A stretch of 64,000 nt of DNA, taken from Antechinus flavipes (Eukaryota). Positions 48,185 through 64,000 of the stretch are shown in pieces. The position numbers and the translations under genes were made by a program. Below the pieces are notes generated by a model that did no database searches, was not told the DNA's origin, and worked only from the letters and a program-made list of their open reading frames with translations. The stretch covers positions 653,232,001 through 653,296,000 of the forward strand of contig NC_067398.1 of assembly GCF_016432865.1 (NCBI RefSeq), given 5' to 3'. Within the stretch, counting starts at the first letter, position 1; each line of letters opens with the position of its first letter.

Positions 48185-48387
48185 TTGCTTAACTCTGGAA
48201 ACTCCTGAACTGGGAGGGACTGATCCCCTGCGTGCTCCCCCTCATACCTCCAAATACACCCCCCCCATCCGGAAATACCGGGCAACTTATTCTGGAGGGG
48301 AAAGCGTGAGGTTTCCGGGAAAGCAGGACCGCCTTCCCCCCTCCCTCTCTCCAGTCCAGCCCCTAGTCACCAAGGGAGATCATAAAA
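48185..48387 (+). promoter_or_regulatory. ICAM1 proximal promoter: C/EBP, NF-kB, ETS, GAS, TATA
   Basis: TTGCTTAA 48185-48192, TGGAAACTCC 48196-48205, CCGGAAATA 48269-48277, TTTCCGGGAAA 48312-48322, CATAAAA 48381-48387; same order as the characterised human promoter. Confidence 0.85.
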
Positions 48388-48459: not shown

Positions 48460-48526
48460 ATGAGAGTCCTCAGCTCCCTTCCCGCTCTTCCTGCGCTCTT
48501 GCTCCTGTCCCTACTCTCATCTTCAG
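48460..48526 (+). CDS. ICAM1: ICAM1 exon 1 (signal peptide)
   Basis: 67 nt, [22 protein letters not shown]|gtgaga. Confidence 0.9.
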
Positions 48527-51500
48527 GTGAGACCCTCGGTCTTGGTTAGCTCTCCTCGCCCCCAGCCCTGTTCCAGACCCCTTGCTTTGCCCCGGGAGGG
48601 ACCAACAGGAGAGCTGCCTGGAGGAGGAGGCACTGTCCTTAGCTGTTCTGGGCTGGCATCCAGTCCCGAAGCTGCAGCTGACTGCTCTGGGTCAGAATTG
48701 AGGGTGGGAAGGAACTTGAGACAACTTTTGAAACACTTGGAGGTGGCAGATAGGATAGAAAGGAGTGAAAAAGTCCCACCGCTCGCTGACCGAGAAGGGG
48801 GTTAGGGCGGGAGGGGGAGTCCGAGGATGGACTGCGTTGGTCTGGAAGGAAGCCTTGTGCCTCGGGGTGCCAATCCCCTCCCCCCAGAATGGTTTTCTCT
48901 CTCTTCAGACGCCTTCGTCTCCCCCTCCCGTCCTCTCCCAGGGGAGAAGTCTATGGTCCCCATGGCGGGGGAATTCCAGAGCTGGGTTCCCCGAGGAAGT
49001 GCTAACAGAGTCAAAAGCGCCCAGGCTTGGGGTGGGGCAAACCCGGGGGGAGTTCCCTTCAAATCTCCGGAGATTAGTTCCTGGGAGACCGACTCAAAAC
49101 GTGTGTGTTGATTGTGAAGGGATAGAAGCGACTCCGTTTCCAGGGCCAGACTCTGGACTCGCGGTCTCTCCTTGCAGGAGCCCAGGAGAACCCCACCAAG
49201 GTTCGGGTCTGGGTGGATCCCCCAAACCCCGTGATCCTCTTGGGGACTGAAGTAACTGTGAACTGCAGCAGCGACTGCGCCGACCCCCTCGGGATCGGCC
49301 TGGAGACCAGGCTGACGAAGGCCGAGGAGAGCTCGGGGACCCACTGGAAAGCCTTCAGGTTGAGTAACGTGACCCAAGATAACAGTCCGCTCTGCTTTGT
49401 TAACTGTCGCGGAAAGCCTCAGGGCATCGCCAAGGCGAGCATCACGGTGTACGGTGAGTGAAAGCGCGGCGGTGTTGGGGGGGACTCGGGGCTCGGCGCG
49501 GGGGGCGCCCGGCAGGTAGGGGCGCGGGGGTGGGGCGTGTGCGTCCAGTTTCGAGGAAGGGCGGGGAGCTTGCCTTTGGTGGAGGAGAGAGTGACTGAGT
49601 GAGTAGCGGGAAGGAAAGGCTGGGTTGGGCAGGCAAACAAATTCCCCGGCCGCGGCATCCTCGCTTAGGAATTCACTTCAACAAAACAAACACTTGATGC
49701 TACTGATTAAGGCTCTGAGGGAGACGGCAGGAAAGTGACTTGTCGGAGCAGGGTCCTGCCCCCGGGAGCTCACTGCCTGAACTTGGAACCGGGCTCGGAT
49801 AATTACAGCTGGGTCGGCAGGCTCGCCGCGGGAAAAGCAGGGACCCAGCTAGAGTGGTCGGGGATTCGGAAAAGGTCGCGTCCGGAGGAGTGGTCGGGCA
49901 GGAACACTGGGACGCGAGAGCGGGTCCTCTCCCCCGGTGGGACCCGGTTCCGACACGTTCCCTCGGAGAGGGGGAGGCCGCTTTCCCCCGCCTCTCCCAG
50001 CCCCGGCTGCCTCCCCTATAGATCCACGCGACAAACATTGAGCACCCACCGAGTCAGAACCTGGTGCCGGCCCCCGGAAGAGATACAGTTTGAGAGAAAA
50101 CACAGTCCCTCCCTGCCCTTTACTAAATGCAAGACAAATGACCATCTGGGAGGTGCAGGACAGAGGGCCAGACTGCGGAGGGCTATGAAACGCTAGGGTG
50201 AGGAATTCGGCATTTATTTAGTGCGTGAGCTATTTCCATGGGTAACAGAAGGGTTTTTGAACAGAGGAGTGATATTACCAGATCTGTCTTTAAGGAGGAT
50301 TTTTATTTTTATTTTTGATGGGGAAGAAAGTCATGAAGAATAAAATGGAGTAAAGAGGAGAGTAGAGGAAGAGGGAGAATGTAGATGAAAAAAACAGTTA
50401 GGAAACTTGCAAATTTTCCTGTAGTCGTCTGCCCTACAGCCTTGAATGAGCGGATACTTTCAGCCTTCTCTTGCTATGGAAAGTAGAAGTGAGGAGGGGG
50501 CTCCCCTATTAAGACTCTTCTGCAAGGGAATCTGAGCCTAGGTCAGAGCCAAAGTCAAAAGTTGTAAAGGTCAGATTGTACAATGAATCAGGCTAGGCCC
50601 TGCTTCTGGCACCTTCCACCTTCCTGTCTGAACTGAAACCAAAATTGCAGCCTTCAGTGCAAGTGTGTCGAAATCTCCTCAGGTAATAGAGCCCCTCTTT
50701 GTCCAGAAGTGTTTACATGCCTACTGAACCTGGCCTAGCTTGTTTCTCCCTCTTAGCCAACAAGAATCAGGATTAGGGTAGAGACTGGACCCGTGATTTC
50801 ATGAGTGTAGGGAACTCTCAGAGAAGGAAATTCCTACCACCAAACTCTCTAATGGTATTCTAAAGGAATACCACTACTACCTGCCATCTAGGGGAGGGGC
50901 TGGGGGCAAGGAGTGGAAAAGTCGGAACAGAAGGTTTGGCAAGGGCCAGTGTTGAAAAATTACTCATGCATATGTTTTGCAAATAAAAAACTATAATAAA
51001 AATTTTGAAAAATTGCCATCTAGGAGAGGGGGGGAAAGGAGGGGAAAAATTGGAACAAAAGGTTTGACAATTGTCAATGCTTTAGAATTACCCATGCATA
51101 TAACTTGTAAATAAAACGCTATTAAATTTTTTTAAAAATTGAAAATTAAAAAAAATACCATTAAATATTTTTAAACCCTTTGCAAATTAGAACATATAAC
51201 CCCAGATTTATAAGCCTTCCCCCAAATGGACCATGACCTATTATTGATAAAACTATGCTGACATGAACTACAGCTTCCACCTCTTTAAAGATTTTTGCCA
51301 GGAATTGAAACCAAACTTATTTTGTTGTTGTTTTAAATCAATAACTCTACTTTCATAGCCAGTAAACCTGCAAGTGCATCCCTTCCTTTCATCCAGTATG
51401 TCTATTCAATATAATAAGAACAAATTAAAAAAAAAAAAAAAGGGAAAACAATTCTGCAAAACCAACCTATCAACTGAGACTACAATATATGTAGTGCTCC

Positions 51501-54500
51501 ACATCTATAGTTCCCTATCCCTTAGTCAAAGGAGAAAAGTTCATCTTCTCATTTCCTCTTCAGGGCTCACTGGCCTAGAGTTAGCAAGTTTTTATTCCCT
51601 GTAGTTTGCAAGTTTTATCTCTCTTCCCTTTTTAAAATTCAATTTTATTTTGTTGTTAAGTTTCAAAATCACTCCCCATTCTATCCTTTGCTCTGGTCAT
51701 CAAGAAAACAATAATACAATAGCATTATAAATATGCAGCAATGCAAAGCATATTTCTACATGAGCAATGGCTCCTTCTTTGGGGGGAGGGGAACAATTGA
51801 TGTTAAGTGACTTGCCAGGGTCACACAACTAGTGTCTGAGGCTAGATGTGAGTTCAGATCCTGATTTCAGGAGCAAAGTTCTACCACTCCAACACTTAAT
51901 TGCCTCAGCCCTCTTTTTTTTTTTTTTTTTGAAAATTGAGAAGCTGTTTGTTTTTTTCTAGTCCTCTGGATCTATTCTCTGTTCATTAGAATATCCCTGA
52001 CAATTGCTCAGCAATGGCATCCACCACTTCTTTCAGTAAGGGATGAATGTATCAGAAAGTACCATTAGGGACTTTCTTGCTATCTTCTTATTTTCCTGGG
52101 TATTAACATCCTTTAGTCATTTTTGTTCCTTCTTTTCCAATCCAAAGGTCTTTTTATTTATTTTTTAACTCGTTGCTTTATGAATCATGTTGGGAGAGAA
52201 AAATTAGAGTAAAAGGGAAAAACCATGGACGTGATAAAAACAAACAAACAAACAAAAAAAGTGAACATAATATGTGTTGATTACATTCAGTCACCTTAGT
52301 TCTTTTTCTGGATGCAGATGGCATTTTCTATCCAAAGTCTATTGTGTTCAATATTCCTGGTTCTGCTTGTTTCAGTCAGTCTCAGTTCATGTCAATCTTT
52401 CTAGGCTTTTCTAAAATCAGCTTGTTATTTTTTTTTGAAAATAATATTCCATTATCTTCATACACCACAACTTGTTCAACTATTCCCCAAATGATAGATA
52501 TCTACTCATTTTCCAATTCTTTGCTACCACAAATAGAGCTGCTACAAATATTTTTGCACACGTGGATTCTTTTTCCTCCTTTATGATTTCCTTGGGATAT
52601 GGACCCAGTTATAAACTTGACTGTTGAGTCAAAGGATATGCACAGTTTTATAGCCCTTTGGACGTTGCTCCAGATTACTCTCCAGAATGGTTGGATTCGT
52701 TCACAACTCCACCAACAATGCATTAGTGTCGTAGTTTTCCCACATCTCCTCCAACATTTATCATAATCTTTTCCTGTCTTCTTAGCCAATCAGAGAAATG
52801 TGAGATGGTATATCATAATAGTTTTAATTTGCATTTTTCTAATCAATAGTGATTTAGAATATTTTTTTCATATGACTATAGATGGTTTTAATTTCATTAT
52901 CTGAAAATTGTCTGTTCATATCCAAAGGTCATTTTTCTAAGCAGAAAAAATGAACAAAAAAATGAATAGCATGACTCAATCTTCTCTTGGCTGTCATTTT
53001 TTTTTTTGTCCATCCTGTGTGCAATGTTGACCTGATTTATCCCTCCTTTAATCTTTTTATCTTCCTCTTTCCTCCAATGACAAGGCCCGGGCAGCTCCGT
53101 CCAGCCTGCCTTCCCACTCACCTGTCCTCGTTCCTTCCCTGCCCCGCAGAGCCGCCAAGGAGCCTGGAGCTGAGTCTGGAGCCTTCTCAGGAGCACTCTT
53201 CTATCCCGATCCCCCTGGGCCAGAACATGACTTTAAGCTGCCGCCTGGCAGGTGGGAGACCCCGGCAGCACCTGACGGTGGCGCTGCTTCGGGGGACCCA
53301 GAAGATAAGCAAGCAGCCGGCCCCAGAAAGTCCCCCCGATACAGTCGTTGTCGAGTTCCCCCTGACGGCCACGAGGCAGGATGACGAGACCAGCTTCTCC
53401 TGCCAGGCTGAGCTGGACCTTCGGCCCCGGGGGTTGGAGCTTTATGAGAGCAGCTCAGCCCCCCTGAAGCTCTCCACTTATGGTGAGGGATTGTGGGGGC
53501 ACTGAAGGGTAGATTGGGGGAAAGCAGGGCCCTGGGAGGGTTACAGCCACTTACGAATATGAATGTTCACAGTGTTGACACATAGTTGCTGCTTATTAAG
53601 AGGCTATTCCCTTCTCCCTCCTCCTTCAGAATTTTATTCTTGAGAGTTACTCATCCCTCCTCAGTTGATTTACCCAGTTCAATATTAGCCCATGGGGTCT
53701 TCTTCCCTAGCACTTCCCTGAAGGAAATTATCCTTTCCCTAAGGGAGGATGACTTTCCTTTCCCTGCTAATTGGACTCTATTTTTCTTCCTCCTTTCCTC
53801 CAAGACATAGCACCAGGGCCCCCGAACCTTACGGCCTCCCGGGTCCTGGAAGCTGGGACCAACAAGCAGGTGAGCTGCGAAATGGACAATCTGTTCCCAG
53901 TGGAGAGAGCTCAGATACAACTGTCCTGGGGAGGGCAGATCCTGACTCAAAACAGCACTACCCGACAAGGCGACCGGCTGAGGGCCACAGCCACAATCAC
54001 GGCCCCGGAGAAGGGTGATCGAGAGCTGACCTGCAGGGTGACGCTGGAAAACGAAACCAGGCAGATCTCAGAAAATGTGACAGTCTACAGTAAGGATGGA
54101 GAGGGAAGCTGAGCGGGGCTGGCCAGGTGGGAGGGGCCAGGGAAGGCAGGGATCACAATCCAGGCTTCCTCTCCTCCAGACTTATCAGAGCCCACTTGTA
54201 CGGTCAGTGAGCCCATCGAGAAGGGAAGCCTGATAAACTTGACCTGCCAGGTCGACCCACCGGCCAGGGCCGTGTTTGAAGGAGCTCCATCTAATGAAAC
54301 TGATAGGCTATCCCTGATAGTCCAGGAGAAAGACAACGGGCGCTTGTTCACCTGCTCCGCTATCCTGGAGCTGAGGGAAGAGAAAATCACCAAGAACTGC
54401 ACCCTGAAAATAAACTTCTCAGGTGAGTGACGACTCCCACCTTCTGACCCCTTCTCTCTTTTTGTGGCAAAGGCACTGACCTCTCCCTCCTGCCTCTGGC

Positions 54501-55838
54501 TGTTCAGAGAAATTCAGTGTATGTGCGTAGGGGGCAGGGGCAGCTGGCACTAACCATCCTGGTATCCAGTCCCCCAAAGCTGGATGAGGAATGCCCAGGA
54601 CACTGGATCTGGCCAGAGGGGACTGAACAGACCCTAGAATGCACAGCCAGAGGAAATCCAGCCCCCGCTGTGAAATGTGTCCTAGCAAACAAACGGGGGA
54701 GATATTAGTTGGGATTCCCCAGTGGGTCACACGGACCCTCAATAGTACTTGCCTCTGCACCGCTAACAACTCCCTGGGAGAAGCAAACAAGTCTGTGCGG
54801 GTGGTCGTGCAAAGTGAGTGACCAGGGAGCTGACCTGGGAGGGAGGGAAGGGTGGCTCAAGTTCGGGAGCAGGGCCTTATTCTGAGGGGACTGAGAACAA
54901 GGTAAATTTCATCTCTTAGAAGGCAGGAAAGCTACACACACCCCCCCTTTTCTCATTGATGAGCACAGAGCTCTGTAGTTTCTAGATAAATCAGTGTTCA
55001 ATAAAATGGATGAATGAGACAACATTTTAGGAGGGTCACAGAGAAACCCAGGCACAGACTAATGAAGGCTCTGCAGCTGGGGAATTGTCTGAAGAAACCG
55101 GGTATGTTTAACCTGGAGGAAAAAAAAAGCATTAGGAATAGAGAGGCAGGAAAAATATATCTATTCTATTGCACATGTGTAACATTTATTAGATTACTTG
55201 CTGTTTGGGGGGGGAGAAGGAAAGGAGAAAAAAAACTAGAACACAAGGTTTTGCAAGGGTGAATGTTAAAAACCATGTGGATGTTTTGAAAATAAAAAGC
55301 TTTTAAAAAAACTATAACTATTCTATTATCTCTAGGAAAATGTGATAAAATTACACTTGTTCTGCCTGAAGCCAAATGAGGTAGGGGTAAGGAGGAAGCA
55401 ACAGAGAAGATTTAATCTCAACATGAGAAAAAAAAAAAGCAAACTTCCTAAAAATAGAATGGGCTGCCTCAGTGGTGAATTCATGTTCATCATCACTGGG
55501 AGTGTCTGAGCCTAAAGAATTTAGGAAACTTTAATAAGGGTACTTCCCCTTGGAGGGATTCGATGGGATTTGCTCTGCAGTCCTGTCCAGTTCTAGAGTC
55601 TTGAGTAAGACAGGGCCACGGAATACTCATTGAGTTCTCCTTCCTTCCAGTCCATGAAGAAATGGACCTGACTCCAGTTCTCATCGGCATACTGGTCAGC
55701 GTGCTGGCTGTGAGTGTTCTGAGCTTCATGGGATACATCTATTACCGGCAGCGGCGAATTAGGAGTTATGAACTGAAGAAGGCACAGGAGGCTAGAGCCA
55801 TGCAGCTGATGAAGCCAGAGGCCAAACTCTGCCCCTAG
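48460..55838 (+). CDS. ICAM1: Intercellular adhesion molecule 1 (7 exons; exon 6 frameshifted as assembled)
   Basis: Signal 48460-48526, D1 49178-49453, D2 53150-53482, D3 53805-54089, D4 54180-54422, D5 54570-54813, TM/cytoplasmic 55651-55838. All phase-1 junctions except D5. GLET integrin motif, [16 protein letters not shown] tail, syntenic position. Confidence 0.92.
49178..49453 (+). CDS. ICAM1: ICAM1 exon 2 (Ig D1)
   Basis: [21 protein letters not shown]...WKAFRLSNV...[21 protein letters not shown]; four Cys; Glu34- and Gln73-equivalent residues present. Confidence 0.96.
50870..51140 (+). mobile_element. Two adjacent short L1 3' tails
   Basis: Each starts at tgccatctagg and ends with a polyA signal and an A-rich tail. 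Confidence 0.75.
52140..52965 (-). mobile_element. L1 3' fragment with internal deletion
   Basis: Reverse strand gives decayed KCWRRCGK...LMHCWW...FWRVIW and REMQIKT motifs. Confidence 0.8.
53150..53482 (+). CDS. ICAM1: ICAM1 exon 3 (Ig D2)
   Basis: [26 protein letters not shown]...[23 protein letters not shown]. Confidence 0.96.
53805..54089 (+). CDS. ICAM1: ICAM1 exon 4 (Ig D3)
   Basis: [31 protein letters not shown]...[21 protein letters not shown]. Confidence 0.96.
54180..54422 (+). CDS. ICAM1: ICAM1 exon 5 (Ig D4)
   Basis: [12 protein letters not shown]...NLTCQV...[16 protein letters not shown]...[10 protein letters not shown]|gtgagt. Confidence 0.94.
54570..54813 (+). CDS. ICAM1: ICAM1 exon 6 (Ig D5), disrupted by two apparent 1-nt deletions
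   Basis: [36 protein letters not shown] is in one frame and [39 protein letters not shown] in another; 244 nt versus 246 expected. Confidence 0.85.
55651..55838 (+). CDS. ICAM1: ICAM1 exon 7 (TM and cytoplasmic tail)
   Basis: [62 protein letters not shown]. Confidence 0.95.
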
Positions 55839-56269
55839 AGGGGGGTCCCACCCTTCCCTGCACAAGCACTTTTTTGGAGAGCCCCAGGGCTGGCCCCAAA
55901 AGCCTGAAGCCTGGGCCGGGAAGCTGCCTGAGCTCTTCCTGGCTGTCAGCACAGTGCGAGAGCTTACTCACCTCTGGCTTTGAGGAACCTGCAGTCTCTT
56001 TGGAGCCACATAACCAGGGGGATGGGAAGCCGAGGTGATGAGAATTGTGGGGCTGAAAAAGATGTGGCTGACTACTGATCCCTGGGACCCAGGGACCTGG
56101 GAGCACAAGAAGGCTCCTGTGGAGCCCTGGGCCTTGCCCAGCACAGAAGGATAAACACTAGCTGAGGGCTGCTTCAGCACTTGGAGCTGGAAAGAGGGGG
56201 AAAAGGTGGAATAAGGCGGAGATAGTTGGGTGTCCTGGCCCATAGCTTGTGGTCTTTTCTACTCCTCCC

Positions 56270-56275
56270 AATAAA
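56270..56275 (+). terminator. ICAM1 polyadenylation signal
   Basis: AATAAA ~430 nt after the stop. Confidence 0.6.
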
Positions 56276-56406
56276 ACTTGACCAATGTCTCTGACTCTAC
56301 TTCTGGGGCAACCAAACACTGGTCCCCTACTCCCCAACCTGACCTTGGACTCGGTGGGAAACAAAAGCATCGGAAGGGTGGAGTGGGTGCCACGGACTGT
56401 CAGTGA

Positions 56407-56980
56407 TTGGTTGGTTGGTTTCCTTCATTCTCAAAAAGGACCCAAATGAATCACTGGGTTTGAATGGAGTTAACGTGTCTGACTGAGGTCATCCGAGCTC
56501 TCTGAGCTGTCACAGGTTGGACACAGATAGTCCCTATGAAGGCAGACTCTCTAACTTGGCCCATCTTGAGTTTTTTCTGAGCTAGTTCAGTTGTGCTTTC
56601 TCAGAGAGGGTACACCGTGCTGGGAGGCGTGTCCTGTGCCAGTGTCTCCCATGTCATACAATCAATTCTAAATTTCTTGAGTGTCTTTGTTTCAATTTTT
56701 TGGGCTGCCTTGTGAGTACTTGCCCTGGGTGAGCTCCCTCAGATAGTCTTTTTGGTAATTTGACATTTGAACAATGTGCCCAGCCCAACGCAGTTGGCTC
56801 TTCGGTACAGCTGGGATGTCCGGTAGTTTTGTTCCATAAAGGACCTCGGGGCCCCATACCTTCTCCTGCCTTCAGAATCTCCCTAAGGCAAGTGAAATGG
56901 AAACGCTTCAGTTTCCTGGCCTGGCAGACTGTCCAGGTTTCACAGGCACACAATGCGGTCTGCGGCTCTGGAGACCTTCA
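56407..56980 (-). mobile_element. RTE-clade LINE 3' fragment
   Basis: Decayed ACETWTV...RKLKRFHFTCLREILK...WAH...LPKRL RTE RT C-terminus; caac-repeat tail. Confidence 0.85.
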
Positions 56981-57476
56981 GGTTGTCGGTCAGTCTGACA
57001 CCTCCCCTCTCCCCCACCTTCCTCAGATCTCCCAGACAGTGAATTACCTCTGGCAGTGAGTGCCTGCTCATACACGCACAAGCCCTGAAACACTCACACA
57101 CTCTGTCTCTTTCCTTCTTCCTCCCTCCCTCTGCCTCTCTGTCTGTCTGTCTGTCTCACATACCCACACAATAACTGAAGAGTTCCATTAAGGGGGAATT
57201 CCATTCTCCTAAGGTGGCCTATTTAACTACTGTGGGCCAGCTCTCCTTAAGCACTTCTCCCTGACATTGAGCTCCTTGCTCTTTTTTCTTATTTCTCTTA
57301 TATTTTTACTTATTTCTTATTATTTACTTATTTCTCTTTGTTCTACCCTCTGGGAGCAAGCAGAACATCCCTAATCACATGATGCTCTTTAATGAATTGA
57401 AAGCATCTATTAGTCACACTTTCCCCCACCTTCTTTTCTTCCAGTTGAACATTCCCAGTTCTTAAAAAATTTTCTT

Positions 57477-57753
57477 GCTAAGCATGGTGTCTGCATCTGT
57501 CATCCTTGCTACTAGAGGATGGGGTTGGTGGATTGCTTGAGTTCTGAACTGCAGCAGCTGAAATAAATGAACAAACAGGAATGATGAATGAGTACCGACA
57601 ATGGTTAGGAGTAGGGGACCATCAGGTTGCCTAAGGAAGACTGAGGCTGCCCAGATTGGAAAAAACAGGTTAATGGTTCCATGCAGAGCCATGAGTGACT
57701 ATTGTATATCCAGTCCTGGGGAAATTGGGAGCCGCTGTTTCAAAAACAAAAAA
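57477..57753 (+). pseudogene. Degenerate full-length 7SL (SRP) RNA retrocopy
   Basis: Colinear anchors to 7SL: gctaagcatggtg...ctgtcatcc.tgctact, ggattgcttgagt, ggggaccatcaggttgcctaagga, gcccagattggaaa...caggt, tccagtcctggg, then an A-rich tail. Confidence 0.85.
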
Positions 57754-59147
57754 GTCACATGGCAGGCTTGCTAATGTGTTTCCTAAAATGAAACATCCAG
57801 AAATGAACACAGTATTCTATGGATAGCCTGGTATGTCGAAGGACAGCATTAGGCTCACCCTCTGATTGAGTTTGACTTTCACTTTCATTTTATTAGATTT
57901 TGTTGGGAGGTTCAAACTGCCAAGACTTTTTTGGAATACTCTTGCATCCAATGTCTCAGCTCTTACTCTAGCTTTGTTTCATGTATAAATTTCATAAAAG
58001 GGCCCCAAATTTTATAAGCTTAAATAAAGGTCTTTATTTAAGTCACAGATAAAAATACTAAATAGCACTGGTCAAATATGGAATCCTGAGATCCTTTGCT
58101 TCTGAATGGGCATGGAGCCATTAATCACTGACTTTTGGGTCATCCCATTCAGGGAGCCCTAAAGCCACTTAATTTTTACAATTGTCTAGCTCTCCATTTT
58201 TAAACATTTCTAGCTTGGTGCTAGAGTAAACTCACAAAGGCATAGTACAAAATATTTAAAATTTTTGACAAATAATAGGACTTTGGTTATTTTGGGGGAT
58301 GGAGAATTGCTATAAAAAATTTCTGAGACACAGTACACAGTACACAGGGACATAGTACATAGAATACACCGAACTGAGAAAGCGTGAGAGCTCCAGTCTG
58401 GCCTAAAATCTCTTTTTTTCATTAGTGAGAATATTATGACTTTCTCAAAATCCTTTGTTAAAACTATATACCTACAGTAGTCTTATGAAAGCTCTACCAA
58501 CCTAGAAACCTGGTTGAAAAGGGGGAGGAAGATAGTTCGATATGACCTTTTCCTCCTCTGACACTGAATACTCTCTGACTTAATGGTGCATGGGATATCT
58601 ATTATGTCTCTTGGAGAACAAATATCTACTTCCTAATCCCCCTTTGGGAAGAACTTTATATCCATGGCTTATCTTTAATACCTTCAGTAGTCCTTTCCTT
58701 TCTTCTTTGCTGCTTCAACTTCCCAAATTCTTCCTCTCCTGTCACTTTCCCTTCTTCCTTTTATACTGACACCCATTTTTAAAGTAAACATTTTATTTTA
58801 TTATACCTAGGAGCGGGGTAAGGCATTCCTGTTCCTCAAGGCCCTTTGCTAGCTCCTTTTCTAAGAGGAAGCCCAGCCTTCACTCCAGCACAGTCAGACA
58901 TTCCCCTTTCCCCACCTCCACCATCACTTCCTAACTTCCTATCATATGTCCAAAGATCCACTTACATACTTGCTCCCACACAGAACTCCAGGACCCTGTT
59001 CTGGCTTATCTGGCTCAATGGCCAGGGGAGGGGGGGTTGGAAGAGGGGTATAGATGGATGCACCCCCTTCTGACAAACTCTGTCAGGGGGTGGGGGAGAG
59101 TATTATCCCTCCTGCTGGCTCTTAACATAGAGGGCCTCAGAGGGCCA

Positions 59148-59173
59148 GGGTGGGGCTGCCTGTGACCTTATCT
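59148..59173 (+). promoter_or_regulatory. ICAM4 erythroid-type promoter (CACC/KLF box and GATA)
   Basis: gggtgggg 59148-59155 and cttatct (AGATAAG on minus) 59167-59173 just upstream of the ATG; no TATA. Confidence 0.7.
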
Positions 59174-59213
59174 CTGTGCCTTCCGAGAGGCCCTCAGTCC
59201 CGGGATCCTCGCC

Positions 59214-59277
59214 ATGAAGGCACCCTCCCCTCTTGCCTTCCTGATCCTGCTGCTGGCTGCCGCTGGTGGTGGCCAAG
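59214..59277 (+). CDS. ICAM4: ICAM4 exon 1 (signal peptide)
   Basis: gccATGA; MKAPSPLAFLILLLAAAGGGQ|gtgaga; phase 1. Confidence 0.85.
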
Positions 59278-60964
59278 GTGAGAAACTGAAGGGGGTTGGA
59301 TAGGACTCGGCTAGGAGGCCAGTCTCCTGGACTGATCTGGAACTTTAGCAGACACCTTCCCCAGGAGTCCCCTAGGTGCTGAGGTTGGGGGCGGGGGGCT
59401 ACAAGAGGAAAGATGAGAGATTATAAGTAGAAGTCTGAATCCTTCACTCTGTAACTTCTTTCTCAGGACTCCTGGATTGTGTGGACTGTGGGTGTATAAG
59501 GTGGGGAGGGGAATGAAAGCCTGGAGGCCCTCCTCCCCAAACTCCCCTTCTTCATCTCTCTCTTCTTCCTAGCCTCAGTTGGAGGCTGACGGGTTAGGAG
59601 TATTCCAAGGTCTGTCTCACCCCTTACTTCCTAAGGGGCTTCCTTCAGTGCCAGAGCATTTCTGAGCTCTAATATGGCCTTAGGAAAGGCCAAGATTAGT
59701 TTGGAATGATGGGATCAAGGGAGAGAAAGTTCGGGCGCCTGGGAGCTCAGAAAATTGACCCTCTCTTCATGGCTCCCTCCACAGAGGCCCGCAGGCCCTT
59801 CTGGGTTCAAGCCTTGCCCCGAGAGGTGAGCGTATCCCCTGGCAGTTCCGTTTGGATTAACTGCAGCACAAGCTGTGCCCAGCCAGAAGCCTGGGGACTG
59901 ATCACTTCACTGACTCAGGGCAAAAAGGTGGCAGGACCAGGATGGGCCGCTTTCCAGGTGCTGCATGTGAGGAGGTGGGATTCAGCGGTCCGATGCTTCT
60001 TCACATGTGCGGGAGAAACCCAGGAGGCCACTGCCACAATCAGGGCCTACAGTGAGTGGAAGGGGTCAGCGCCCTGGCTCTCAGAGCCTCCCGGGTGGTC
60101 GTGGGCTGGAGCTGGCTCGGCCCTGGGACGTGTGGGGCTCCAGGGGTCTCTGGCTTCCAGCGGCTGAGGATTGGGAGGGCTGTAGGGCTCAGAGAGGATG
60201 TGGGTGACCAAAGCGGTTGTCTCCACCCTGCCTCTCCCTTTCCCCAGGCCCCCCGAGCACCGTGGTCTTGGAACAGCCGCCCCTCCTGGACCTGGGCACC
60301 GAGTACCAGTTGCGATGCCGGGCATTCTTTGTCTTCCCTGTGGAGAGGCTAACTATGATCCTGAAACTCGGGGGCAGAGTCCTGTGGTCCACTAGCTTAG
60401 CGGGATCCGGTGACAGCCTGTACTCAGCCAATGTGACCTGGACCTTCACACTCCATCCCCGCCTCCAGGACATAGGGCAGCTCATGTCCTGCCATGCACA
60501 GCTTAACCTAAACAGCGTCCTGGTCACTCGAAGCTCCAAGCCCGTGAAGCTCCACTTCCGAGGTAAGGTCCCAAGCGGGAGGCCCACCCACAAGGGCCCC
60601 GTGGGAGGTCCTGGCTGTGGGAATTAGGGAGTCATTGCTCGCTGCCTGCTTCAGCTGGAGAAGGAGGCTGGGCGGGAAGGAACGGGGTGCTGGGAGAGGA
60701 GAAAAGACGGCAAGATACTAGGAGGGAAGGAGAAGTGGAGCTTCAGAAAAGCTCGCTGACCTCACCTCCTGCCCTTCCTTCCTCTTTTGTGCAGAGAACC
60801 CGTTGTCTCGAGTGGTAGCCTGGGTCGCCTTAGCAGCCCTGGCTGGGCTCCTGCTTCTTACGGCTTCAGGTGCGTTCCTCCTGCAGCCCAGGGGCCAGCT
60901 GCAGCCAAAAGGCGCCTGCCTCCCCCAGGTGGAATCCCAGCTGAGAAGGTGTTTGGGACGTTGA
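59214..60964 (+). CDS. ICAM4: Intercellular adhesion molecule 4 (LW glycoprotein), 4 exons
   Basis: Exons 59214-59277, 59785-60051, 60248-60562, 60795-60964 in frame. PFWV...NCSTSC.QP...QGK...GPGW...FQVLHVR.W...TCAG (D1 lacks the GLET Glu), VFPVERL...ANVT...CHAQLNLNS (D2), TM, short tail. Confidence 0.94.
59785..60051 (+). CDS. ICAM4: ICAM4 exon 2 (Ig D1)
   Basis: ctccctccacag|EARRPFWVQALP...ATIRAY|gtgagt. Confidence 0.94.
60248..60562 (+). CDS. ICAM4: ICAM4 exon 3 (Ig D2)
   Basis: SPPSTVVLEQPP...YQLRC...SSKPVKLHFR|gtaagg. Confidence 0.95.
60795..60964 (+). CDS. ICAM4: ICAM4 exon 4 (TM and tail)
   Basis: ENPLSRVVAWVALAALAGLLLLTASGAFLLQPRGQLQPKGACLPQVESQLRRCLGR*. Confidence 0.88.
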
Positions 60965-61399
60965 CAGCAAGAAGTGACGGGACAGATAAAGGCAGAAAGC
61001 CGAGCCCCAAATAGTGCCTTTGACCCTATTGGCCTCCTAACAAACTGGAAAGGATGCTCCTCCTCCGGCCCTCCCTCGGATCCCCGAGCCAGCCGGCCGT
61101 ACCGGCTTAAGTTTAAGGAAACGGAAGTTCCAGCCTAGCCACAGTCCTGGGCTCCACGTTGTTGGGCTCTTCGAGCAGCAAAGAACTCGGGTGACCAACC
61201 CGGGGGAGGGGAAAGACTTCCAGCGGAGGGGGAAGACACCTGGGTCCAAATCTCTATGTTGCTATAGCTGTGTGGTCTTGAGCAAACTACTGAGCCGTGG
61301 TTTTTCCTCCTAAAAAATGAGAATAATCCCTACCTCACTGGTAGTAAGTAACGTGCTTCTTAAACCTTAAAGACTATAGGAATGCTCGCGCTCCATCGG

Positions 61400-64000
61400 C
61401 TCGCCTTTCTGCCCCCTCCCTCCCCCCGCCCCTTCCCCCGTACTGCTAGCGCACTGGCGGAGCTCTAGACCACAGTCCGTAGCCAGATGCGTCACCCCAC
61501 ATCTTTCACAAGGTAGACTCTAGACTACCGGCTTCCGGTCTCCGGATTTAGAGCAGGAGGCCCAGGGGTCTGAATAAGCCCAGGTCCGCCGGAGCCTCAA
61601 GGTCCCCAATCACCCCCTGTTGGGAACGGAAAATCGGGGGTGGGGGAAACCAGGATGACAGTCCGAGTCTATTGCCTGGGGGTGCCAGAGCGGGCGGGGC
61701 CTCGAAGGAAAGAGAAACCCCAGAACCGAGGCTTCTCCCCATTTGGCCCCCATAACCGGGCCGCTCTCCCCACCCCCGGGCGCCTTATCGAAGCGCAGCA
61801 GTAGGCGGAGAAGGCGGAGTCGAGTGGGGAGGGACTGAGGCCACATGGGGGGCTAGCGGTTCAGAGGGCCATCGGCTTACAGACCAGACCCTGGGACCCA
61901 ATTGGCTCGGCTCCCGCGGGCGGAACAGATCTGATTGGTCGGTTTACGAGCCCACAAGCCCTATGGTTTGCGCGGAGGGCTAGGTGAGGACAGAGGAGGG
62001 GGCTGCGCCTAGCCGGGGCCCAGGTAGGTCCATAACGCGTTGGTTCCCTCGTGTAGCGAGCTCAGGGTTCTGCTCAGAAAGACCTATTTTCGGCTCTCGC
62101 ACACAAGAAGGCCTACGCAAAGACACTCGTCCCTCCCACGCTTAGTAAATCCGGACACCAACGAAAAGCCCCTAATTGCGATTTCCACCGACACGATGCG
62201 CGCTGTACACATGCGCTCGTGCACACTCCGGCACACACGCACACACACGCACGCACAGACTCGGCTGTCTCCAGAGGCAACTGGGCTCTGCCTCCCACCC
62301 TCCTTTCGGTGTGTGGTGCGCGGGGGCGCTGAGAACAACGGTCCCTGACTCTCCTGAGCTAGTAGGACCGTGAGAAGCCGCTCTTCGGTGAAGGAAGGGT
62401 GGAGCCAGGAAATGGGAAGAAGAGAAGCGCACCCGACCTTTGGGATCCCCGGGACAGGAGAGAGTAGGAGGGACCACCAAGAACCCCCCCTTCCTACACT
62501 TGCCCTGCTCTCCCTCAGCCCTCCCCCGCCACACCCCGCCGCCCGCCGGGGTCTCAGCCTCGGAGAAGTCGTCAGCGGCCGGCCTGCTTCGGGTCTCCTA
62601 GGTTCGAATCTGGCCCAGGCCGTCCCCAAGGGATCGTTCGCAGAGCTCCGCTCCCCTCACCCCCACCCCGACTCCCCGTAGGGCCGCCGTGGCCAGGATG
62701 GGGGCGGGGCCTGGGGAAGGCTTTTTGTGCCTGAACGGCCGGGGAAGGAAGTCTGAGGTTAACAGCACTCTCAGCCTGCGCGGTTTTTCGCCATCGAGCC
62801 CAATTCCAGCCGTCAGGCGCGGGTGGTGTGGGAGCCGCGTCCTTCCTTTCACGGGGCCCGGGGAGATGAGAGTAGTCTCCTCCCCGCGGGCGGGACGGAG
62901 CTGACGCGTGCGGGTTCCAGAAAGCCTCCGCTGAGGCGTCGCAGTTCACACCTACTTCCCGCCCCCACGCGCCCGGACTTAGCGGCCCAGTGGCTATTCT
63001 CCCGGCGCTGTGGCCGCTCGGCTGGGGTTAGCGAGGCTTGGTGGGCACGGCTGCGTGGAGGGGCGAGAAAACCAGCCCTCGTTTCCAGCCGCGGAGGCTG
63101 CTGGAAAGGTTCCCGTGGCTCAATTTAATTCAATTCAGCAAGCATTTGTTACGCACCTACTATGTGCAAGACGGTGGTAAGCGCTGCTGGAAACGGCAAT
63201 CCCGAGCCAAGGATGCTCCAGTTGCCTAAGGGTCTCTCGTTTCTTGTTTCCTCACGCTTCTGAGCCTCGCTCCTGCTCTCCTGCTCCTCTCCGCTCCCCT
63301 CTTCTCTCCTTCCTCTCCTGTCCTCTCCCCTCTTCTCTCCTTCCAGCCGCCTCTGCCTCTGCCTCCTCCTCCTCCTTGGATACCAAGTTACCAACGTTAA
63401 ACCAATCCCCAAGCGCAACTTGGCCTCCTCCACACCCTGCCCCGCCCCGCCGCGCCGAGCCCAGGCAAGCGTCCTCCCCGTTTCTCCCTCTCGTCCTCTT
63501 CCTCACCCTCTCCATCTCCGCTTCCCTGCGCTCCGGCTCCGCCGGCAATGACCTTCTCTCGGCCGCTGCTGCTCCGGGCACTGCTCGCCCTTGTGGGGTC
63601 CCTCTGTCTGGGGCTGCTTGCCCTCTCAGGTAAGAGTCGCCCCATCCCACGCCTGTAGGACCTGGACAGGGGGTAGGTATCCCCGACTTGCAGAAGCGGC
63701 TGATTCCCCGTGGAGCTGCGATCCGTCTGTGTCGACCTTACAACCCCAGCCAGCCAGGGGAGAAGTGAATGGTAGCCCATTCCGCTTAGGCCCCCAAACC
63801 CGCTCCATCCCCCACCCCGGGCCGTGCGCGCTCCCGCCCGCCCCCGCGGCACGCGGCTTGGGGGCCAAGGATCTCCGACGTTCCTCTCCTTTTTACCAAG
63901 TCCCGAAGCTCTTGACACTACTTGAAGGATCAGGAGGAAAGTGAGACTGGAGATTTCTCGCTCAGTGGCTAAGATCTCAGAAGGCATAGGAACGCGAGAA
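61400..64000. promoter_or_regulatory. CpG island between ICAM4 and ICAM5 / ICAM5 promoter
   Basis: Continuous high CpG density; ETS, CCAAT and GC-box motifs. Confidence 0.75.
63548..63629 (+). CDS. ICAM5: Intercellular adhesion molecule 5 (telencephalin) exon 1, signal peptide; gene continues beyond the window
   Basis: 82 nt, MTFSRPLLLRALLALVGSLCLGLLALS|gtaaga; matches the recalled human MPGPSPGLRRALLGLWAALGLGLFGLS in length and splice context; syntenic position. Confidence 0.85.

Follow-up and report, generated by a model that had tools for sequence, protein, structure and literature searches.

The window, that is, the whole 64,000-nucleotide stretch of Antechinus flavipes DNA under analysis (196 of its letters are N), carries an ICAM1 gene whose exons all lie on the + strand. 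Exon 1 (48460-48526) contains the start codon and the signal peptide and ends in phase 1. It is followed by the exons for Ig domains D1 (49178-49453), D2 (53150-53482), D3 (53805-54089) and D4 (54180-54422), the last of which ends in phase 1 at the donor CAG/GTGAGT, and by an exon for the transmembrane helix and cytoplasmic tail (TM exon), whose coding part (55651-55838) closes with the TAG stop codon at 55836-55838. Between the D4 and TM exons lie 244 nt (54570-54813) in which three-frame translations, a marsupial alignment, structure matches and RNA identify the former D5 exon, now a skipped pseudo-exon. Transcript contigs of a public run (X3, described below) fit this plan: the first 333 nt of one contig match the length of the D2 exon, a joint links 54089 to 54180, and the same contig stops at the D4 donor.

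The translations of the six coding exons of the window occur unaltered and in succession in a public 463-aa A. flavipes protein named "ICAM1-like" (P0098), with a single residue, from the split codon, between each pair of neighbors. Exon 1 accounts for residues 1-22, the D1 exon for residues 24-114, the D4 exon for residues 322-401 and the TM exon for residues 403-463, with the D2 and D3 exons found between D1 and D4. The comparison was made exon by exon, without a joined spliced model. The coding exons other than D5 total 1389 nt (463 codons). In the public automated annotation of this species, D4 is already joined to the TM exon and D5 is skipped. An earlier sequence-only reading of the window had held that the D4 and TM exons are both in phase 1 and that skipping D5 leaves an in-frame product of 463 aa; the exon sum and the identity with P0098 bear this out.

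We identify the gene as the ICAM1 orthologue, upstream of ICAM4 and ICAM5, because it combines ICAM_N and PF21146 domains, because the order ICAM1-ICAM4-ICAM5 is that of Sminthopsis, and because its D5 has human ICAM-1 domain 5 as best match. The ICAM_N family (Pfam PF03921) matches window positions 49213-49458 with an E value of 7e-23, and PF21146, an inner Ig domain of the ICAM-1/3/5 type, is present in the D3 exon (E 4e-28). The D1 exon contains GLETRL, a conserved L/I-E-T motif found in P0098 and in every marsupial ICAM1 protein fetched, whose acidic residue is the integrin contact in human ICAM-1. Translation of 55662-55835 gives a hydrophobic stretch, judged by eye to be the transmembrane helix, followed by a short basic cytoplasmic tail. 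Window positions 54281-64000 are collinear with a Sminthopsis locus that holds ICAM1, a 271-aa ICAM_N gene, ICAM5, and GATA, Fer2 and RRM genes; by position, the 271-aa gene is ICAM4. Upstream of the coding region, the motif TTTCCGGGAAA occurs at 48308-48327, about 140 bp before the ICAM1 start codon, with CATAAAAGG about 60 bp further downstream. The first of these motifs appears to resemble the GAS element through which the human ICAM1 promoter responds to interferon-gamma.

The D5 exon is bounded by an acceptor AG directly before 54570 and a donor directly after 54813 (GTGAGT), and two -1 frame changes are needed to read it through. Carrying the D4 frame into the exon yields 21 codons and then TAG at 54635-54637, the first stop that would be met if D5 were included after D4. 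The conserved N-terminal half of D5 (PPKLDEEC...KCVLANK) is read in the frame that starts at 54571, which is closed by TAG at 54706-54708. The conserved C-terminal half (...VVVQ) is read in the frame that starts at 54570, from which it exits in phase 1, fitting the TM exon at 55651. Among solved structures, the N-terminal piece is best matched by domain 5 of human ICAM-1 (7bg7, 1z7z, 1p53, 2oz4; E about 1e-9). The exon coordinates and length, the two stops, the positions of the C5 and G5 runs and a TGC codon at 54750, all put forward in the sequence-only reading, were reproduced on the sequence.

Alignment over D5 with four marsupial loci, those of Sarcophilus, Sminthopsis, wombat and brushtail possum, resolves the lesions. 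Lesion 1 shortens a run of six C to five (54571-54575, -1): the ancestral exon start is a T followed by six C, wombat and possum have C6, and Sminthopsis and Sarcophilus keep the ancestral length. Lesion 2 is the loss of the A from an ancestral CAGGGGG (-1), which now brings C54694 next to G54695. The G5 run at 54695-54699 is as long as in the ancestor; what was lost is the A before it. Both lesions had earlier been placed in homopolymers; that placement stands for lesion 1, in the C run, and falls for lesion 2, which removed a base outside any run, so that lesion 1 alone sits in a homopolymer. Two further changes mark the exon. The F-strand Tyr codon, TAC in all four aligned marsupials, reads TGC (Cys) at 54750-54752 and is Antechinus-specific, and an 8-bp indel at 54781-54788 is polymorphic, being present in the window, in Sminthopsis and in Sarcophilus and missing from other individuals of the same organism.

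To set the window beside independent data, contigs of four public runs were placed on positions 53700-55900, which provides evidence at the contig level, with rare variants dropped. X1 consists of whole-genome short-read DNA contigs from the same organism as the window. X3, also from that organism, is evidently an RNA run because its contigs are spliced. The C5 run at 54571-54575 is present in the contigs of both, as in the window, and both lack the 8 bp at 54781-54788. The G run adjoining lesion 2 is itself polymorphic: the window and X3 carry five G (G5), X1 and X9 four (G4). X9 (organism C) differs from the window at 88 of 1534 letters, a divergence of about 6%; it has the 8 bp and the ancestral C6 but also a 3-bp deletion of its own, and its D5 exon would be 241 nt long and likewise out of frame. 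It appears to share lesion 2, as it shows no inserted base there. X5 (organism B) contributes, in place of a contig over the exon, a short piece at 54570 without an inserted C, which is weak evidence. No contig of the four runs shows an inserted base at lesion 2, and none carries a repaired form of D5 with C6 and a restored second site. Three D5 haplotypes with different frame-breaking states in one species would fit a neutral remnant.

These contigs bear directly on the possibility that the D5 exon is truly intact at 246 nt and that a base was lost in assembly from each of two homopolymers. The A. flavipes assembly rests on PacBio continuous long reads, with short reads used for polishing (PMC9290055), and lesion 1 does sit in a C run, as such an error would. 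Short-read DNA and RNA contigs of the same organism nevertheless repeat C5 and show the second site without an insertion, lesion 2 took an A from beside a G run that has its ancestral length, and further frame-breaking variants (G4 and the 8-bp deletion) segregate. The RNA, moreover, skips the exon, and the public annotation arrives at the same 463 aa. We consider an assembly artefact extremely improbable. The sequence-only reading had left a choice between a real four-domain ICAM1 and an assembly error: the contigs with C5, the RNA joint and the public protein support the former, and the agreement of X1 and X3 with the window contradicts the latter. The mapping of short reads over the lesions that it had proposed, carried out here with assembled contigs, reproduced C5 and left the second site unrepaired.

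Inspection of the X3 transcripts reveals a GT..AG joint that takes D4 straight to the TM exon, from 54422 to 55651, at a word depth of 98. A contig of 862 nt, at word depth 74, consists of exactly D2, D3 and D4 and ends at 54422; the contig of the TM exon reaches a depth of 167. The sole X3 contig over D5 spans 54393-55266 at a depth of 16.6; it is unspliced and shows no branch at either D5 border. Joints into or out of D5 are absent from the X3 RNA contigs. That is to say, of the two junctions that had been set against each other beforehand, 54422 to 55651 was found as predicted and 54422 to 54570 was not found at the contig level. The joint creates a Val codon. The D5-skipped form is the main transcript form, although a minor isoform that includes D5 may escape contig-level data. 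A transcript that included D5 would be expected to be a target of nonsense-mediated decay, as more than 50 nt would separate its stop from the last junction downstream. Were this decay to hide such an isoform, some of the skipping seen in the contigs could arise after transcription. A different D4 donor at 54426/GT, which would carry D4 into the frame of the N-terminal half of D5, was considered and rejected: the RNA uses 54422, and lesion 2 still breaks the frame. Within the intron between the D5 remnant and the TM exon, positions 55106-55327 form a very high-copy repeat, with a summed contig word depth of about 1e6 in every genome run examined and many loose ends and repeat-type joints. This repeat probably explains a constant word share of about 0.1 in many runs of organism D.

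Other marsupials were reached by a search with the D3 exon, without a profile, which led to a 543-aa ICAM1 of Gracilinanus agilis; that protein as query gave the list of marsupial ICAM1 proteins. Products that contain D5 are found in wombat (546 aa), brushtail possum (544 aa) and Gracilinanus (543 aa), and the shorter isoforms of koala (483 aa) and tammar (491 aa) likewise have D5 sequence at their ends. In contrast, the automated public model of Sarcophilus harrisii ICAM1 is 463 aa long and joins D4 to the TM exon, and the longest Sminthopsis crassicaudata product on record, also an automated public model, is a four-domain protein of 464 aa. A second search, with P0098 as query, found no D5-containing dasyurid protein among its relatives. 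In a second Sminthopsis isoform (P0102, 437 aa), the C-terminus diverges beyond D4 and resembles the TM exon translated in a different frame.

At the DNA level, the check in related marsupials that the sequence-only reading had suggested finds a D5 remnant in three dasyurid genera and an intact D5 in wombat and possum. These intact exons measure 246 nt in wombat and 237 nt in possum; each has an open frame and is used in the protein of its species. The Sarcophilus remnant is 247 nt long and carries an added A, a TGG to TAG change at a conserved Trp, and a CGG to TGA change. The Sminthopsis exon (positions 290-535 of its locus) is 246 nt, fully open, with all Ig hallmarks and intact splice sites. 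Antechinus and Sarcophilus have no frame-breaking lesion in common, and Sminthopsis has none at all; therefore the D5 frame was intact in the dasyurid ancestor.

This distribution lends itself to more than one history. D5 may have been lost separately in Antechinus and Sarcophilus through coding lesions, with skipping or nonsense-mediated decay as the consequence. The want of any shared frame-breaking lesion is what such a history predicts, and a dN/dS below 1 within dasyurids would fit a late loss. Values for D5 within dasyurids are indeed 0.4-0.8, but the functional D1-D4 exons give 0.86 (Antechinus versus Sarcophilus), so the measure cannot discriminate and is uninformative on relaxed constraint. 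The Sminthopsis exon, moreover, is open and yet left out of the longest annotated product, which points to skipping that needs no coding lesion. The splice signals of the three genera also share features. In all three, the CTAAC branch-point motif of the D5 acceptor is separated from the AG by 2 bp less than it is in wombat and possum, and the pyrimidine tract is poor. Their D4 donor is the full consensus CAG/GTGAGT, as compared with TAT/GTAAGT in diprotodonts, and the TM-exon acceptor has a long pyrimidine tract. Weighing these observations, we regard separate loss by coding lesions as improbable, while granting it more room than any other alternative considered here. Constitutive skipping probably arose once, on the dasyurid stem and before the frame decayed, because even the open Sminthopsis exon is left out of annotated products; each lineage would then have gained its own lesions.

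A second history holds that D5 is kept as a regulated alternative exon and is not simply dead, which we think unlikely. Under this history, inclusion in Antechinus and Sarcophilus would lead to a premature stop, and D5 would act as a poison exon or yield a secreted D1-D4 form with a short novel tail; this part seems to us equally doubtful. In Sminthopsis, inclusion would produce a five-domain receptor and the exon would serve as a four/five-domain switch, a proposal to which we give as little credence. Continued or occasional use of D5, above all in Sminthopsis, is likewise a slim prospect. All three dasyurids nevertheless preserve the acceptor CAG and the donor GTGAGT, Sminthopsis has an open frame along all 246 nt, and one koala model ends right after D5, so that soluble splice forms are at least modelled in marsupials. 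D5 is also no more diverged than the introns around it, and less so on the Sminthopsis branch. On the Antechinus branch the rates are similar, with 11 of 244 D5 sites changed compared with 11 of 359 in the flanking introns, and on the branch comprising Sminthopsis and the stem the corresponding counts are 7 of 244 and 26 of 359; the numbers are too small for a firm test, and the branch counts offer only a hint of slower D5 change on the Sminthopsis branch.

Several observations weigh against a regulated exon. The X3 RNA contigs contain no D5 junction, and their unspliced contig crosses both borders of the exon unbranched, while in Sminthopsis the longest product on record has 464 aa. Each of the four D5 changes that are specific to Sminthopsis replaces an amino acid, and after so few substitutions an open frame is expected by chance in about 0.7 of simulations. 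In Antechinus, two polymorphisms, the G4 variant and the 8-bp deletion, speak against constraint. Loss of D5 use may still be more recent, or incomplete, in some lineages, because the splice sites are intact, divergence is no faster than in the introns, dN/dS stands at 0.4-0.8 and the Sminthopsis frame is open.

Four things are shown: the lesions, the RNA joint from D4 to the TM exon, the match of the window's exons to the public 463-aa model, and the presence of D5 in non-dasyurid marsupials. We are confident in one overall explanation, namely that D5 is a decaying, dead exon skipped by the mRNA and that Antechinus and its dasyurid relatives make a four-domain ICAM1; skipping probably came first, in the dasyurid ancestor. 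In this explanation, the sixth ICAM1 exon would once have encoded Ig domain 5 and would now be dead, with the spliceosome joining the phase-1 D4 donor at 54422 to the phase-1 TM acceptor at 55651. Weak D5 acceptor signals set against a consensus D4 donor would be a possible cause of skipping. The predicted product is a type I membrane protein of 463 aa with four Ig domains, D1-D4, which would keep the signal peptide, the LET motif of D1, D2-D4, the transmembrane helix and the basic cytoplasmic tail. Once skipped, the exon would have been freed from selection and would have begun to decay, reaching in this species two fixed 1-bp deletions and a Tyr-to-Cys change, with G4/G5 and the 8-bp deletion still segregating.

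In human ICAM-1, LFA-1 binds D1 and Mac-1 binds D3. The four-domain receptor would retain both domains and may be expected to serve still as an integrin ligand; the product is likely a working ligand whose height above the membrane is reduced by one Ig domain and which does without the membrane-proximal domain.

ICAM-1 is a textbook five-domain adhesion receptor. The five-domain ICAM-1 (CD54) of eutherians and non-dasyurid marsupials occupies the same locus with one Ig domain per phase-1 exon, and the dasyurid gene resembles it in its ICAM_N domain with the LET motif, in D2-D4, in its single transmembrane helix and in its basic tail. Unlike it, the dasyurid mRNA lacks the membrane-proximal D5, and the window product has four extracellular Ig domains where the five-domain form has five, with 463 aa as against 543-546 in wombat, possum and Gracilinanus. 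Variation in domain number is itself familiar in this family, as human ICAM-2 and ICAM-4 have two domains and ICAM-5 has nine, and in these proteins too the N-terminal integrin-binding domain is kept. These are old paralogues, however, whereas here an ICAM1 orthologue has changed its domain number within one marsupial family, with the remnant still recognisable.

A close parallel lies in mouse, where whole phase-1 Ig-domain exons of ICAM-1 are skipped in frame to give shorter membrane-bound receptors (PMC4863998). These isoforms (D1D2D3D5, D1D3D4D5, D1D2D5, D1D4D5 and D1D5) all keep D5 and are minor beside the full-length protein. The same review describes full-length ICAM-1 as mostly dimeric and assigns LFA-1 and Mac-1 to separate binding domains. 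In Antechinus, in contrast, D5 is the domain that is lost, and its loss is fixed in the genome and appears constitutive. An ICAM-1 without D5 is an architecture absent from the isoforms given in that review. The A. flavipes genome paper (PMC9290055) does not mention ICAM, and the literature searched contained no description of a four-domain ICAM-1 or a dead D5 exon in marsupials or dasyurids. The gene models are already public, and the domain loss is one for which no published description was found.

A marsupial family with D1-D4 only would offer a natural experiment on what the membrane-proximal domain contributes, for example to receptor height, dimer presentation and shedding. It would also show exon loss caught part-way: of the three genera, one has a frame that is open yet skipped, another a frame with light damage and the third a frame with more, and the window species still carries segregating indels. 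For annotation, the 463-aa models are right and should not be "repaired", and the locus is a worked case of a "broken exon" in a long-read assembly that turned out to be real. The architecture also matters for reagents used in the immunology of dasyurids, the Tasmanian devil among them.

Two further features of the retained domains were noted. In a comparison of Antechinus with Sarcophilus, dN/dS is about 1.2 for D1 and D2, as against about 0.55 for D3 and D4, values which suggest that the ligand-binding end of dasyurid ICAM1 is evolving very fast. D4 has four cysteines in Antechinus (..PTC.., ..LTC.., ..FTC.. and ..KNC..) as compared with the canonical two in Sarcophilus and Sminthopsis, and the extra pair, situated in what is now the membrane-proximal domain, appears to be Antechinus-specific.
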